From Thecamonas trahens ATCC 50062 (Eukaryota > Protista > Apusomonadida): a DNA stretch of 64,000 bases. Made by a program: the position numbers and the translations under genes. Each line of letters opens with the position of its first letter. Position 1 is the first letter of the stretch. The stretch covers positions 143,021 through 207,020 of the forward strand of contig NW_013657621.1 in the NCBI RefSeq assembly GCF_000142905.1, in the 5' to 3' direction. The notes beneath the pieces are model-generated. The model was not told the origin of the DNA. It was given only the letters and a program-made list of their open reading frames with translations, and did no database searches. Positions 866-49,117 of this stretch are shown piece by piece.

Positions 866-1310
866 TGGTTGTGGTGGGTGTGGGTGTGGTTGTGGTGGTT
901 GTGGTTGTGGTGGTGGTGGTGGTGGTGGTGGTGGTGGTGGTGGTGGTGAGGAAGGCCCTTTTTGCCTGTCCGCCGTTTGCTCTTTCGCCACCGACCTGTC
1001 CTTTCCGTCCACGTCTACGTGAACAGGGGATGCACGACTTGGGTACGTGCGCGTTCGTGTACGTATGTATGTACGCGTGTGTGTATGGGTATACCTCTAT
1101 GAGCGTATGTATGTATGTGTGTATATTCGTGTGTATGCGTGTGTGTGTGTGTGTGTGTATGCGTGTGTGTATGCGTGTGTGTGTATGCGTGCGTGTGTGT
1201 TTGGTGACGGAACCCCCGACCTTGGTACTGGTGGGGGCGGTAACGGAGGGGGGGAGGGGGTGGGGGGGGGGTGGGGTGGTACTGGTACTGGTACTGGTAC
1301 TGGTGGTGTA
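866..1310. repeat. Low-complexity tract: (GGT)n, (TG/TATG)n, poly-G and (GGTACT)n microsatellites
   Basis: Directly visible simple repeats. Confidence 0.9.
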
Positions 1311-2507
1311 CGTTCTCCTCCCGGTAAGGGGTTGGGAGGGGGGGGGGGTTGGGAGGGGACGGTAGACGGTAGAGAGGTGTGTGTGCTGGGTCTGCGGTGC
1401 GTGGTCATTGTCTCGGTCTCGGTGCTGTTATGGTCGTCTCCCCCCTCCCCCTCCCACCCCCGCTCGCCCCATGTGTGTCGGTCAACACCGCCACCACCGG
1501 CACTGCCATCGGTTTGAAATGGAGGCTATCCATTGGCGCCATGTGCGGATTGCAAAAAAAATACATCGCCCAGAAATGGTGAGGCGTCATGGATGGACGA
1601 TGTTGCGGTTGATGGCAGGGGAGGTTTGCTTGAGATAGTAGGGGATGGTTTCTTGATGATAGGCTGGGGCAGGGGTGGGAGGCGACGACCGGTGGGTGGG
1701 GATGAGGAAGTGCTTGGGAGAGGCTATCCGTGGACAGGCCGTGCTGCACAGACGTGCGGGTAGGATGCAGGTGTGGCAGAGCTTGTGACATGTGGTGTGC
1801 AGATGCGGGGAATTTCGCTGCGTCTTATCCTCCGCACTGCCGCGTATGCGCATGATCTGCTCCCAGCACGAGGTAGAGAGGGAGATCACCATACAGTCTG
1901 ATGTGTGTGGTGGTGGTTTGCGGCTGGGGGTGGGATGAAAAGGGTGTGTGGCGTGTGTTGATGTGAAGGGACAACATGATGACTGACCGGAAATATGTGA
2001 TCAATGGTTTTCGCCGCCCACACCGGATGAGACCGGCTTGGCTCGCCAGACGGTCGCGCGCGCGCGCGCGAGAGAGAGAGTAGGCAGACCAGCGGTGTTA
2101 ATGCTGTTGTGGTGCTTTTTGCCATCGGAAGCATGTACTGTTCAATCTCCATCGTGATGACCGAGGCCCGACACGACCGTTTGCGCAAGGCAAGATCACC
2201 CGCCAGCACCCCCGCCGCATCCTCCTAGCATCCTCACCCTCACCATCCCACATCGCTAGCTCATCCCCATCCCAGGATCGCCAAGATCCCCATGATCCCC
2301 ATCTCTCCCCCCAAAAGGAACACCTCTTCCAAACAAAAAAAAAGTGATTGCCACCCAGACCACCCGCGCCGAATAGTCCTTTTTACCTGTGAGGTCACTC
2401 GGCTCAGGGCGGTCGGCGCGCCGGGCTCGGCTTCTGCGGCAGCACTCAACGCAGAGCGACTGTGTGTGCAGTCAGCAGGAGACAAGGGCAAGAGGAGGAA
2501 GCCGACC

Positions 2508-44822: not shown

Positions 44823-46115
44823 ATGTCTGTAGATGGACTTGACGAGTACACGGCGGAGAGCATTGTGGAGCGGTACCGCGACGAAGGCGTGGTGACGCGA
44901 CTGGCGTTTCTCGCAAGGGCACGGCAGAGGGCAGGCGAGGAGGAGGCTGGGAAGGAAGCCATGCGGCTGGCGGTGGAGGCGGTGAAGGGCAACTCGCTGG
45001 ACGTGGAAGGGTACAAGGCGCGGGTGACGGAGATGCAGGAGATGGACATGTCGTACATGGCCGACTCGGAGTGGATGGCTCATGCCATGGCCGAGGGAGA
45101 GGCGCTCCTTGGTGAGCTCAACACGGACATGGCCCACTCGCGCGGCACGCTCAGCCGGGAGGCTGCTCGCACAAAGTGGACTGAGATTTCGCTGGCGTAC
45201 ATGCGGGTCGGTGCGTGGAAGTCGGCGCAGCGGGCAGCTATTCGCGCGCGTGACTATGCCGGATCAAGCCATCATCTCGCGCTGGCCAACGCCATCCTCC
45301 ACATTGTCCGCTGTCTTTTTGCACTTGGCGAGGCCCCGCAGACGGTCACCTTTTCGGCCAAGTTCCGCAAGTGGACCGACATCCCGCCCGAGACCGTCGC
45401 CCATCTCCGCGCCGCGGTGGGCGTCGGCTACCTTGCGGCCGGCTCGTTCAAGTCGGCGGCGCGGGTCCTAGTCGACGTCACCGCCGCCCTCGACTCGGCC
45501 TTCAACTACGTGGCGACCATGGCCGACGTCGCGGTCTACGGCGCGCTCACCGCGCTCGCCTCGTTCGACCGTCACGAGCTCAAGAGCCTTGTCCTCAACT
45601 CGGCCTCGTTCAAGCCGCTTCTCGAGCTGGTGCCGGCCATCGGCGAGCTCGTGGCCGACTTTTACGGCTCGCGCTACCACGCGTGCCTCGGCGCGCTCGA
45701 CAGCCTCCGCCTCCGCCTTGCGCTCGACCCGTACCTCGCGCCGCATCTCGACGCGCTCTACGCGGCCATCCGCTCAAAGGCCCTCATCCAGTACTTTTCG
45801 CCCTTCCGCTCGGTCGACCTCAACCGCATGGCCGAAGCCTTCTCCACCTCGCTCGACGGCATCACTGCCGAAGTCGCCGCCCTCATTGTCGCCGGTGACA
45901 TCTCGGCCCGCATCGATTCGGAGAACAGCATCCTCTACGCTTCCCACACCGACCAGCGCGCTTCTACCTTTCACGCGGCGCTCAAGGCCGGGGCCCAGTT
46001 TGAGCGCCAGACAAGGGCCATGCTCTTCCGCGTCAACCTCCAGCGCGCCGGCTTTGTTGTCGAGCAGCCGCCGAGTGCCCGCGTACCGACCTCCGGCGCG
46101 GCTGGGAGCGAGTGA
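44823..46115 (+). CDS. CSN1: COP9 signalosome subunit 1 (PCI domain)
   Basis: Motifs RARDY, DVAVYGALTALASFDRHELK, LDPYLAPHLDALYAAIRSKALIQYFSPF and ISARIDSENSILYA. Confidence 0.94.
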   Translation: MSVDGLDEYTAESIVERYRDEGVVTRLAFLARARQRAGEEEAGKEAMRLAVEAVKGNSLDVEGYKARVTEMQEMDMSYMADSEWMAHAMAEGEALLGELNTDMAHSRGTLSREAARTKWTEISLAYMRVGAWKSAQRAAIRARDYAGSSHHLALANAILHIVRCLFALGEAPQTVTFSAKFRKWTDIPPETVAHLRAAVGVGYLAAGSFKSAARVLVDVTAALDSAFNYVATMADVAVYGALTALASFDRHELKSLVLNSASFKPLLELVPAIGELVADFYGSRYHACLGALDSLRLRLALDPYLAPHLDALYAAIRSKALIQYFSPFRSVDLNRMAEAFSTSLDGITAEVAALIVAGDISARIDSENSILYASHTDQRASTFHAALKAGAQFERQTRAMLFRVNLQRAGFVVEQPPSARVPTSGAAGSE

Positions 46116-46291
46116 CAACAGGTAAAAGGTCAGGTACAAGAACGTGTGTTAATGTGGATGTGGTTCGAGTGGCACAATGGCCAAGAGACTGCGAGAGGTG
46201 CGCCGTTGATCAGTAGCGTGTGCCTGTTGATGCGATGTGATGCGGTGAGTGTGACGAGACGGGAGAGGGAAAGGGGAAGGGGAGAAGGGGG

Positions 46292-46374
46292 GCAAGATTG
46301 TCAGAATCAAAGGTAGTCTCCACGAAGGGTCAGACATATGCTTGTCATTGATAAAGATCATCGTCCGATCTTGC
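46292..46374 (-). ncRNA. Box C/D snoRNA, U27 (SNORD27)/snR74-like; predicted guide for SSU rRNA Am28-equivalent
   Basis: 7-bp terminal stem GCAAGAT/ATCTTGC; C box ACGATGA; guide GACAAGCATATG just before D' CTGA, perfectly complementary to conserved 18S CAUAUGCUUGUC; C'-like GTGGAGA; D box CTGA. Confidence 0.9.
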
Positions 46375-46607
46375 ATTTGCGAGAAATAAGGTTGGCCGGA
46401 AGACTCTATGATACTTACATGTCGCCAGGCGGTGAAACCTGTATCTCCTCGATCCACGCACGTCTCTGTTCCTGACTGCGGTTGCGTGCTTGCACTGGGA
46501 AGTCCTACTCTCACTGTACCGTTTGCAATGTAGCCTCGGTGAGTGCTGTGTCGTCATGACGAGGTGAGGGGGGGGGAGGGGGCAGGATAGAAGAAAGAAA
46601 ACAATGT

Positions 46608-46697
46608 TCAACTCGGATGGTGATGCATGAATATCCTCAACGCACGATGTGCTCAGAAAGGATTCTATGGATATTAAAGCAATTTCGTCACTGTCAA
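46608..46697 (-). ncRNA. Box C/D snoRNA, U33 (SNORD33)/snR55-like; predicted guide for SSU rRNA Um (yeast U1269/human U1326 equivalent)
   Basis: C box GTGACGA, D' CTGA, C' TGAGGA. Guide CATGCATCACCAT before D box CCGA pairs with 18S GUGGUGGUGCAUG. A second element CCATAGAATC pairs with the adjacent 18S GAUUCUAUGG. Confidence 0.85.
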
Positions 46698-47164
46698 TGC
46701 TGTGCATGCACTGTGGGTGCAAGAGTGAGCCTGGCCGATCCAGAACGAGGTCTGTGGCGGGGGAAGGCTGCACGGGTCACAGCAGCTGCTGTTGCCTTGG
46801 GAGGGAAAGAAGGAGAACATACCATGAGAGCAAGACACGCAATGGAGTGCACGCGTGACCACCTGCCTCGACCAGTCGTCGGTCACCATTGAGTGGCGGG
46901 CGACGGGGCGGGTAAGAGGCAGACAAAGCGTCGGACAAAAGCCGGATGGAGGAATCCAAATAATTGGTCGCAAAGTGCTGGACACGACAAATGCGGAAGA
47001 GGGGCCGGGTGAGTGATAGAGCGGAAGGATGAGAGGCTGAAAAGCAAGAGCAGAATAGCAAGAGCATGGAGTTGGCAGCAAGGATGTTGGACAGCCCCGC
47101 TCGCTTGGGGGAGGTCAGGGGGGGGAGTGGGAGGCGGTGAAGGTGGAGCAAAAAATGCCTCCCA

Positions 47165-47248
47165 AGTGGCGGTCAGAGAATCATATTTGGTTTGTCTCAT
47201 TGCAAGCGCTCTGAAGTAGCAAGTATTGTTTCACATCACACCGCCACT
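47165..47248 (-). ncRNA. Box C/D snoRNA, U24/snR24-like; predicted guide for LSU rRNA Am1449 (yeast numbering)
   Basis: 9-bp terminal stem AGTGGCGGT/ACCGCCACT; C box GTGATGT (U24-type variant); guide AATACTTGCTACT before D' CAGA pairs with LSU AGUAGCAA(A/G)UAUU; C' ATGAGA; D box CTGA. Confidence 0.88.
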
Positions 47249-47585
47249 GCGTCCAAGAAGGATCAAGAGGAGGGAGCAAGGGTGGGGGGATGGGGAGAGG
47301 CCGAGGAGGGGGGTTAGGGAGGGGGGGGCGGGAGTGATGCAAACACATACAATTACGACATTGTCGGAGCTGAGAAAAGTGGTGCCGTCTGGGAAATGGA
47401 TGGCTGGTCGATCGGTCGAGCTCGCCAAACCGGGTGAGTTTGGTACGACGCGTCGATCCGATCCGTCGAGCAAGTGGTTCGGAAATGCGAATGGGGGGCT
47501 GGCTTGTTTCCTCGTCTCTGGCTACCGTGGCTAGCCGAAAGTCGCGAGCCACGCGTTCATTGTGGATCGAGAGGAGAGGGGGGGC

Positions 47586-49117
47586 TCAACAGGAGCAGCC
47601 ACCCGAGTCCTTCTTGGCCGGGGCACTCTCGCCGGTGATGATGCGGGAGGAGGAGGTGGTGGAGCCAGCGGCAGGCTTGTACTGGACGCCGACTTCGCCC
47701 TCGTTGAGATCGAGCGAGCCGTCCTTGATGTTCTTGTAGATGAGCTTGGCCGAGTCAAAGAAGGCGTCCTGGACACCGTCGCCGGTCCTTGCCGACGTCT
47801 CGAGGAAGAGCAGGTCGTTCTCCTCGGCAAACTTGGCGGCCTCCTCGTAGGTCACGTCACGCTGGGTCGAGAGGTCGCTCTTGTTTCCAATGAGCACAAT
47901 GACAGTGTTCGGATTGGTGAGATTGCGGGCGTCGGTGAGCCATGACGCCAGGTGCACAAACGTCGACCGCCGTGTGATGTCGTACACCAGCAGCGCGCCT
48001 GCCGCCCCACGGTAGTACGACCGCGTCACAGACCGGAACCGCTCTTGGCCGGCTGTGTCCCAGATCTGCAGCTTGATGTGCTTGCCTAGCACGTCGATGA
48101 TCCGCGTCCCAAACTCGACCCCGATCGTGTGCGTCGAGTCCGCCATGAATTTGCCCTCTGTAAACTGATGCAGGATGCACGACTTGCCCACGCCCATGTC
48201 GCCTGTTCCCACCACGCCACGCCACGCCATGCCATGCCACGCCGTGTAAGTCGTGTCGACGTCCTGTCGTCCCGCCGCGTCCAACCATACAGCACCGCCT
48301 CCCCCCCCCGTTCTCGCCTCCTCTCGCCCTCGCCCTCGCCCCCTCCCCCCCTGCTCCTGTCCTTCCTCTTCCTCTCTCTCTCTCTCTCTCTCTTCACTCC
48401 TCCCGCCCNNNNNNNNNNNNNNNNNNNNNNNNNNNNNNNNNNNNNNNNNNNNNNNNNNNNNNNNNNNNNNNNNNNNNNNNNNNNNNNNNNNNNNNNNNNN
48501 NNNNNNNNNNNNNNNNNNNNNNNNNNNNNNNNNNNNNNNNNNNNNNNNNNNNACGCGATTCCCCCCCCGCGTTTATAGCATTATTTGGGCTAGCCTTGGC
48601 CCTTCCGCCAGGCGGGGGCTTCCTTTCTGTTTTTTGTTCTTTTAAAACTACGCGCGCTGGGGAGCATTCTCCCCCACTCGCCCTCCCGTCTCCACACACA
48701 CACGCCAGGGTCGGGCGGCGGCGAGAGGGGCAGCGAGGGGGGGCAAAAACCCCCGACGGACTGGCGGGCACACCCGGACTTCCATAACGTACCAATGACA
48801 ATGTACTTCCTGTAAATGGCAACCAGGCATGTGAGTAGATAGCCAAGACCATGAGCTACACAATGGTACCCATGGAGAGTGTATAGGCACGAGCATGTGC
48901 CATGTAGGAGGCCGGCGGTTGGACAGCCGCGCCTGTGGTGGCAAGCCATGGAACGCCAGGTCATCACCCGCCACGCGGCGTTATCGCCCACAGCGAGGCG
49001 CGGAGGGAGGGAGGGAGGAGGGGAGGGAGGGAAGGAGGAAGGGAAGAGGGAGAGGGAGAGGGAGAGAGCCAAGCCAGCAACATACATGATGTACTCATAG
49101 TCAAAGGACGCCGCCAT
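47586..49117 (-). CDS. RAB14: Rab14 small GTPase; exons 49086-49117, 48793-48809 (17-nt micro-exon) and 47586-48202
   Basis: The spliced product reads [65 protein letters not shown] (221 aa). Donors are GTATGT and GTACGT; acceptors are CAG. Confidence 0.95.
48409..48552. other. Assembly gap (N), inside Rab14 intron 2
   Basis: Run of N. Confidence 1.

Follow-up and report, generated by a model that had tools for sequence, protein, structure and literature searches.

A probable non-protein-coding host gene for three intronic box C/D snoRNAs in Thecamonas trahens

A spliced minus-strand RNA between CSN1 and Rab14

Thecamonas trahens is a marine flagellate that belongs to the apusomonads, the sister group of the opisthokonts (animals plus fungi). 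We analyzed a 64-kb stretch of DNA, hereafter called the window, from strain ATCC 50062. The window corresponds to C59:143021-207020 in an assembly of 28.7 Mb and 131 contigs. The source organism was identified by the last exon of Rab14, which is 100% identical to the 'Ras-like protein Rab-14' of T. trahens at NCBI. In the gap between CSN1 and Rab14, the minus strand at 46148-47379 contains four proposed exons, three introns and, in each intron, one small nucleolar RNA (snoRNA) of the box C/D type. We consider it likely that this region is a T. trahens gene that is dedicated to hosting snoRNAs and does not code for a protein. Its exons and introns are as follows; all positions are those of the window, and lengths are in nucleotides (nt).

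47351..47379, minus strand: proposed exon 1 (29 nt), with a putative 5′ end at 47379 (CTTTTCTC)
46978..47350, minus strand: intron 1 (373 nt; donor GTATGT at 47350, CAG acceptor ending at 46978, ACTCAC at 47014-47009)
46823..46977, minus strand: exon 2 (155 nt; in RNA contigs of runs X4 and X9)
46514..46822, minus strand: intron 2 (309 nt; donor GTATGT at 46822, CAG acceptor ending at 46514, ACTCAC at 46544-46539; joint of 46513 to 46823 in contigs of two libraries)
46419..46513, minus strand: exon 3 (95 nt; in RNA contigs of runs X4 and X9)
46224..46418, minus strand: intron 3 (195 nt; donor GTAAGT at 46418, CAG acceptor ending at 46224, ACTCAC at 46250-46245; joint of 46222/3 to 46418/9 in the X4 contig)
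46148..46223, minus strand: exon 4 (76 nt; 3′ end at or past 46148, where the X4 contig ends)

RNA libraries with near-identical sequence were found by a search, and the contigs of four libraries were aligned to 45800-48900. It should be mentioned that such contigs show neither the ends, the strand nor the level of an RNA. In run X4, a marine metatranscriptome, a contig of 342 nt falls on 46148-46222, 46418-46513 and 46823-46977, with 0-2 mismatches per piece. Run X9, an rRNA (ribosomal RNA)-depleted single-organism library from a study other than that of X4, contains a contig of 169 nt, which falls on 46459-46513 and 46823-46936. Intron 2 (46514-46822) is thus skipped exactly in two libraries from unrelated studies. 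Intron 3 is skipped (46223/4-46417/8) in one library, X4, and the shorter side of this joint is 75 letters long. Both skipped stretches are bounded by CT..AC on the plus strand, the reverse complement of GT..AG, and the RNA that has lost introns 2 and 3 is therefore a minus-strand one. These results show that introns 2 and 3 are spliced out as predicted.

For intron 1, the RNA evidence is indirect. The match of the X4 contig stops at 46977, which is the predicted start of exon 2, and the contig continues for 16 further letters that depart from the adjoining genomic sequence. These letters fit the removal of intron 1 and an upstream exon of at least 16 nt. A first-pass annotation made from the sequence had placed three GT-AG introns at these coordinates: the joints in the RNA contigs bear out introns 2 and 3, and intron 1 has the indirect support just described. 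The snoRNAs themselves were not covered by RNA contigs of the aligned libraries. In run X2, one further joint, from 47030 to 48049 with 6 additional letters, was rejected as spurious: its depth was 2.2 and one of its sides lies in 48034-48077. Many contigs accumulate on that segment with 3-5 mismatches and evidently come from other organisms.

The signals in the DNA agree with the first-pass annotation. The pyrimidine run CTTTTCTC (47379-47372), the two-codon reading frame ATG-TCG-TAA (47361-47353, within proposed exon 1), the three donors and the three acceptors are each present on the minus strand where it had placed them, and so is the branch-like motif ACTCAC in all three introns. If this motif is the branch site, its branch A would be 32 nt (intron 1), 26 nt (intron 2) and 22 nt (intron 3) from the last intron base. 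In the 64-kb window, the two strands together contain 19 copies of ACTCAC (approximately 0.15 per kb per strand). From this count, we calculated that the chance of finding ACTCAC in all three zones of approximately 20 nt is approximately 3e-8. Because the motif is rare in the window, three occurrences in three narrow zones are far beyond chance. The first intron of Rab14 also contains ACTCAC (48836-48831), 21 nt before its AG, as had been noted. The interval is also less GC-rich than its surroundings, in line with the earlier description: the GC content of the exons is 0.41-0.58 and that of the introns is 0.49-0.57, as compared with 0.637 for the whole window.

Guides and targets of the three snoRNAs

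Each intron contains one candidate box C/D snoRNA.

47166..47249, minus strand: snoRNA 1, U24/snR24-like, in intron 1 (7-bp terminal stem; C box UGAUGU, D′ box CAGA, D box CUGA)
46607..46698, minus strand: snoRNA 2, U33/snR55-like, in intron 2 (variant boxes, C box GUGACGA and D box CCGA; weak stem with G-U pairs)
46293..46373, minus strand: snoRNA 3, U27/snR74-like, in intron 3 (6-7-bp terminal stem; C box CGAUGA, D′ box CUGA, D box CUGA)

The first-pass annotation had proposed Rfam SNORD24, SNORD33 and SNORD27 as the families to look for, and the outcome was divided. At the gathering thresholds (41 bits for SNORD24, 44 bits for SNORD33 and 52 bits for SNORD27), an Rfam scan of the whole 64-kb window gave no match. 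In the permissive E-value mode, three full-length matches to C/D families were obtained on the minus strand, one per intron. The SNORD27 match (46369-46297; 35.2 bits, E 7e-4) is the sole match to this family in the whole 28.7-Mb genome, and the SNORD24 match (47245-47168; 25.9 bits, E 0.15) is the best of its family in the genome. The SNORD33 match (46698-46607) scored 22 bits with E 0.77. Another SNORD33 match, on contig C29, falls in apparent coding sequence and was discarded as a false positive. Because all scores are below the gathering thresholds, we call the three RNAs U24-, U33- and U27-like by target site and guide, and do not treat them as curated family members.

The guides were then compared with the 18S and 28S rRNAs of T. 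trahens itself, and the target nucleotide was assigned by the rule of the fifth nucleotide upstream of the D or D′ box. The guides adjoin D or D′ boxes and pair over 12-14 bp with sites homologous to yeast A28, approximately U1269 and A1449. Thus, the earlier claim that every intron holds a C/D snoRNA with a guide complementary to rRNA holds against the organism's own rRNA. All three RNAs have C and D boxes, a terminal stem and an antisense element beside a D or D′ box that is directed at a known site; the boxes of snoRNA 2 are variant.

In snoRNA 3, GACAAGCAUAUG lies one base before the CUGA D′ box and forms 12 of 12 Watson-Crick pairs with 18S 25-36. The predicted methylation is at A28, and 18S Am28 is the snR74/U27 site (PMC2780460).

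The D′ guide of snoRNA 1 pairs over 14 bp with 28S 1630-1643. When CAGA is taken as the D′ box, the predicted methylation is at A1634. This nucleotide follows C1622 at a distance of 12 nt, just as Am1449 follows Cm1437 in yeast; therefore, A1634 corresponds to the U24 Am site (yeast Am1449), which is listed for plants and yeast (PMC3511168). A different reading of the D′ box would place the methylation at C1636. The guide of snoRNA 1 reads AAUACUUG as compared with the family consensus AAUAUUUG, and the T. trahens 28S rRNA at this place reads CAAGUAUU. In other words, the 28S rRNA has GUAGCAAGUAUU where the U24 consensus guide implies GUAGCAAAUAUU, and the guide of snoRNA 1 has the matching C. 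Because the change in the guide is mirrored in the organism's own 28S rRNA, guide and target have co-varied and the guide is tuned to T. trahens rRNA. The D guide of snoRNA 1 gave no match in the T. trahens rRNAs and may be either an orphan guide or a decayed one.

The D guide of snoRNA 2 pairs over 14 bp (including two G-U pairs) with 18S 1274-1287, and the predicted methylation is at U1278. This nucleotide corresponds to the U33/snR55 site, 18S Um1265-1269 (Um1265 in Neurospora) (PMC2780460). A second stretch of snoRNA 2 forms 12 perfect pairs with the adjoining 18S 1264-1275, for which we calculated a chance expectation of approximately 0.002. Because four unpaired bases separate this stretch from the D′ box, it looks like an accessory pairing rather than a second guide. 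In addition, snoRNA 2 has C in place of U both at position 5 of the C box and at position 2 of the D box. In a typical kink-turn, these two positions are occupied by opposing U residues that form a U-U pair.

The 3′ ends of snoRNAs 1, 2 and 3 lie 190, 93 and 73 nt, respectively, before the 3′ splice sites of their introns. The long tail of intron 1 contains no further RNA that could be recognized by a permissive Rfam search, which gave no match, or by excess structure (z = -0.5).

A second locus and the alternative explanations

Two weaker SNORD24 matches, 300 nt apart on contig C8, led to a second locus that has the appearance of a non-coding snoRNA host. This locus, L006 (G000:C8:408736-411815), extends from approximately 461 to 1800 on the plus strand (C8 ~409196-410500). 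Its first exon is short, starts with CTTTTG (CTTTTGTTCACAGCTCATG, followed by GTACGC) and ends in ATG directly before the donor GTACGC. Three introns are predicted, with donors of the GTAYG type, C-rich tracts, ACTCAC 18-40 nt before each AG and one C/D snoRNA each. The exons contain many stop codons, their GC content at third codon positions (GC3) is 0.46-0.70, and the reading frame from the first ATG stops after five codons in exon 2. Because the upstream neighbor of L006 is divergent, L006 must have its own promoter. Its snoRNAs are as follows.

L006 756-853, plus strand: snoRNA 1 of L006, snoZ157-like (35.7 bits; predicted target 28S C2606)
L006 1196-1274 and 1501-1580, plus strand: snoRNAs 2 and 3 of L006, near-identical U24-half RNAs (CAUACCAAGAUC-G-CUGA)

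The guide of the U24-half RNAs pairs with 28S 1619-1630, and its predicted target is C1622, which is equivalent to yeast Cm1437. The U24 D guide missing from snoRNA 1 of the window is thus present twice in L006: U24, a two-guide snoRNA, would have its functions divided between two loci. The 3′ ends of the L006 snoRNAs lie approximately 84-99 nt before the 3′ splice sites. When the two loci are taken together, five of the six snoRNAs end 73-99 nt before the 3′ splice site, near the distance of approximately 70 nt that is important for splicing-coupled processing of box C/D snoRNAs in mammals (PMC5054931).

Several observations weigh against a dedicated non-coding host gene in the window. The Rfam scores are below the gathering thresholds, the intron 1 junction was not seen directly in the RNA contigs, and snoRNA 1, at 190 nt from the 3′ splice site, lies beyond the usual distance. 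Furthermore, an open reading frame (ORF) of 78 codons runs, in exon-wise translation, from the ATG at 46889 across exons 2, 3 and 4 to the TAA at 46151-46149. An alternative donor, GTAATT at 47356, would join the first ATG to this ORF and extend it to 109 codons. The spliced RNA, whose exons sum to approximately 355 nt (29+155+95+76), might then be the mRNA of a small lineage-specific protein of 78 residues (or 109 with the donor at 47356), and it is abundant enough to have been assembled in two libraries. We nevertheless regard this explanation as improbable. Exon by exon, we tested translations, Pfam matches and homologues. In the frame of the 78-codon ORF, GC3 is 0.59, 0.42 and 0.40 in exons 2, 3 and 4, respectively, in contrast to 0.84 in both CSN1 and Rab14, and exon 2 gives 0.57-0.59 in all frames. 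The exon peptides matched no Pfam family. The peptide of exon 2 (51 residues) had no credible homologue among 1.84 billion representatives: the two matches were repetitive, multi-stretch matches in long proteins, which we read as low-complexity matches. Moreover, ORFs of 100-140 codons are common across the frames of this GC-rich interval, accepted non-coding hosts of Neurospora carry ORFs of 159-267 bp (PMC2780460), and the upstream ATG-TCG-TAA precedes the ORF. On this sequence evidence, the 78-codon ORF is most likely accidental. With GC3 of 0.40-0.59, no Pfam match and no credible homologue, the exons have little or no coding potential, as expected for a snoRNA host gene. The first-pass annotation had stated that the interval contains no credible ORF. 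This statement stands in so far as the exons lack a coding signature, a Pfam match and a homologue; it needs correction in that a 78-codon ORF, without the local codon-position GC bias, does span exons 2-4.

The other objection comes from Rab14. Rab14 lies on the same strand, and its stop codon precedes the proposed start by only 207 nt; the snoRNA introns might therefore be introns of the Rab14 3′ untranslated region (UTR) or arise by read-through. In that case, the host would be protein-coding and there would be no separate non-coding gene. Moreover, ACTCAC followed by several AGs is present at 47436-47370, between the Rab14 stop codon and proposed exon 1, so that 'exon 1' could be internal. 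However, Rab14 and the host exons were never joined in one contig, although contig coverage cannot prove absence. In X4, the host exons are covered at depth 9, without a near-identical Rab14 contig over 47568-47879; in X1 and X2, Rab14 contigs are present and the host exons are absent. L006, with its divergent upstream neighbor and similar short first exon, also argues against this origin. Furthermore, with three exon junctions far past the stop codon, all Rab14 mRNAs would be expected to be classical substrates of nonsense-mediated decay (NMD). The reciprocal coverage and the analogy with L006 favor an independent transcription unit, and we consider an origin from Rab14 unlikely. The third explanation supposes that the snoRNAs are produced from their own promoters or by cleavage independent of splicing, and that the spliced transcript is incidental. 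The distance of snoRNA 1 from its 3′ splice site is in its favor. So is the precedent of frog oocytes and human in vitro systems, where certain intronic snoRNAs are processed independently of splicing (PMC11028025). Yet the 49 nt between the 5′ splice site of intron 3 and the start of snoRNA 3 would hardly accommodate a promoter, and five of the six snoRNAs at the two loci end 73-99 nt before a 3′ splice site. The arrangement of one snoRNA per intron, found six times, would be difficult to account for if splicing played no part. Of the explanations considered, this one appears to us the least probable.

The pyrimidine run CTTTTCTC (47379-47372) and the CTTTTG of L006 are candidates for a 5′ terminal oligopyrimidine (5′TOP) start: in genes of that family, transcription begins at a C that leads an unbroken pyrimidine tract, and growth signals act on translation or stability. 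The start of the host gene also resembles the leader of a ribosomal protein gene. In RPS8 (L012, G000:C39, ~2075-1725, minus strand), the first exon ends right after the ATG (ACCATG, followed by GTACGG), and GISRDSRHKRR is encoded after an intron of approximately 300 nt. The RPS8 leader, GGCACCGTTTCTCTCTTC...ATG followed by GTACGG, resembles the host-gene start GGCACCACTTTTCTC. A genome search with the start motif shared by the two host genes (CTTTT..CAGCTC..GTAYG) found only the two seed loci, as compared with three matches for the reversed control, and gives no support to a family of genes that share this motif. The RPS8-like motif GGCACC..TTTYTCTC gave two matches, one of them beside an assembly gap, and also showed no enrichment over its reversed control. 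A scan for bacterial promoters and terminators found nothing, which is irrelevant for a eukaryote. Two other ribosomal protein genes were observed on this occasion. An intron of RPS3A (L014, G000:C48, ~1100-1500, plus strand) holds a possible box C/D snoRNA (UGUGAUGU ... CUACUGAUCC), and in the RPL32 leader (L013) a 5′UTR intron ends 5 nt before the ATG.

The neighbors of the host gene in the window are as follows.

44823..46115, plus strand: CSN1 (COP9 signalosome subunit 1; Pfam RPN7, PCI and CSN1_C; GC3 0.84), convergent with the host gene
47586..48203, minus strand: last exon of Rab14 (Pfam Ras; stop codon 47588-47586), upstream of the host gene on the same strand

The end of the host RNA contig at 46148 is 33 nt from the stop codon of CSN1 on the opposite strand. 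Because this gap is so short, the convergent transcripts must nearly abut or overlap. In Rab14, the exon boundary at 48203 was placed from an RNA contig. A micro-exon of 17 nt (48809-48793, minus strand; GAAGTACATTGTCATTG), encoding KYIVIG, has the short first intron on one side and the long second intron on the other. The second intron contains a run of N (an assembly gap) at 48408-48552, flanked by GA/AG-rich simple sequence, and repeats lie beside the gap at 48314-48408. The 5′ leader of Rab14 has a possible intron (49084-48932, minus strand; GTATGT ... CACAG) with a long CT-rich tract. A snoRNA was considered in this intron and rejected, since the GUGAUGA that it contains lacks a D box downstream.

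Proposed pathway and comparison with known systems

The first-pass annotation had described a spliced gene without coding potential that holds one C/D snoRNA in each intron. The joints in the RNA contigs, the pairing of the guides with rRNA and the GC3 of the exons all support this core. We therefore propose the following pathway. RNA polymerase II would transcribe the minus strand from a start that we infer near 47379 to an end at or just past 46148. The spliceosome would remove three GT-AG introns, as shown for introns 2 and 3, and the excised introns would be debranched and trimmed by exonucleases to box C/D snoRNPs (small nucleolar ribonucleoproteins), by analogy with intronic snoRNA biogenesis in animals and yeast. 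The U24-like RNA is predicted to direct 2′-O-methylation of 28S A1634, the U33-like RNA that of 18S U1278 and the U27-like RNA that of 18S A28. Thus, the locus yields three testable methylation predictions; current views are not overturned. The spliced exons would most likely be a by-product, which is possibly prone to decay. No intron function is apparent in the non-coding host beyond the carrying of snoRNAs. The suggestions of the first-pass annotation that this protist is intron-poor and that the introns are kept only to release snoRNAs are inferences and belong to its weaker points.

Conservation was sought in metagenome contigs. A synteny search based on CSN1 gave 98 pattern matches, none of which was confirmed, and the exact pattern of exon 2 had no match in the same contigs; both results say little because near relatives may be missing there. 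In the literature searched, non-coding snoRNA hosts are described for animals and fungi only, and our search yielded no publication on the snoRNAs of Thecamonas or on genes that host them; most subscription journals are outside this search, so that reports from other protists or plants are possible. The annotation of protist snoRNAs is very thin (PMC11028025, PMC12309372). The first-pass annotation had placed this design outside animals and fungi. Taxonomically, this is true; however, apusomonads are the sister group of opisthokonts, and the phylogenetic reach of the claim is modest. The apusomonad example indicates that genes with introns as their product do not depend on the large, intron-rich genomes of animals, since this one occurs in a compact genome of 28.7 Mb.

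A further idea goes beyond the locus, and we think it rather doubtful. Dedicated non-coding hosts that carry one snoRNA in each intron might be older than the split between apusomonads and opisthokonts, might be regular in Thecamonas (at least two loci), and might share pyrimidine starts like those of ribosomal protein genes, which would couple the supply of snoRNAs to growth. If this were true, humans, fungi and Thecamonas would all have U27 in a non-coding host because of common ancestry and not through convergence.

Among known systems, the mammalian hosts UHG/SNHG1, GAS5, U17HG, U19HG and U50HG are the obvious comparison. Like the Thecamonas gene, they produce a spliced transcript of the RNA polymerase II type with one C/D snoRNA per intron, and their exons have only short ORFs without a coding signature. 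Approximately 70-90 nt separate their snoRNAs from the 3′ splice site that follows, as is the case here in two of the three introns. Human U27 is reportedly hosted by the non-coding UHG, a finding attributed to Tycowski et al. in 1996. In contrast, the exon sequences are unrelated, the Thecamonas gene is tiny (approximately 1.2 kb) and the mix of snoRNAs differs: human U24 resides in RPL7A and human U33 in RPL13A. Moreover, the mammalian class is defined by a 5′TOP start, polyadenylation and sensitivity to NMD, whereas the likeness of the Thecamonas gene rests on architecture.

The UHG-like clusters I-V of Neurospora crassa are also similar. These non-coding hosts are likewise compact, their introns carry one C/D snoRNA each and their ORFs measure only 159-267 bp, and the Neurospora homologues of U27 (snR74 / Nc CD21, 18S Am28) and U33 (snR55 / Nc CD34) are intron-encoded (PMC2780460). 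Guide elements have been split and recombined between snoRNAs in Neurospora, like the U24 guides of Thecamonas. The combinations of snoRNAs are different, there is no evidence that the host genes are orthologous, and alternative splicing has been reported in Neurospora. The snR72-78 polycistron of yeast is the intron-less counterpart of the fungal cluster hosts. Within T. trahens itself, L006 has the same anatomy as the host gene in the window and different snoRNAs (one snoZ157-like RNA and two near-identical U24-half RNAs). Compared with these systems, the gene between CSN1 and Rab14 follows a known design that is solidly supported in its core; it does lie outside animals and fungi, although only a short step away from them.

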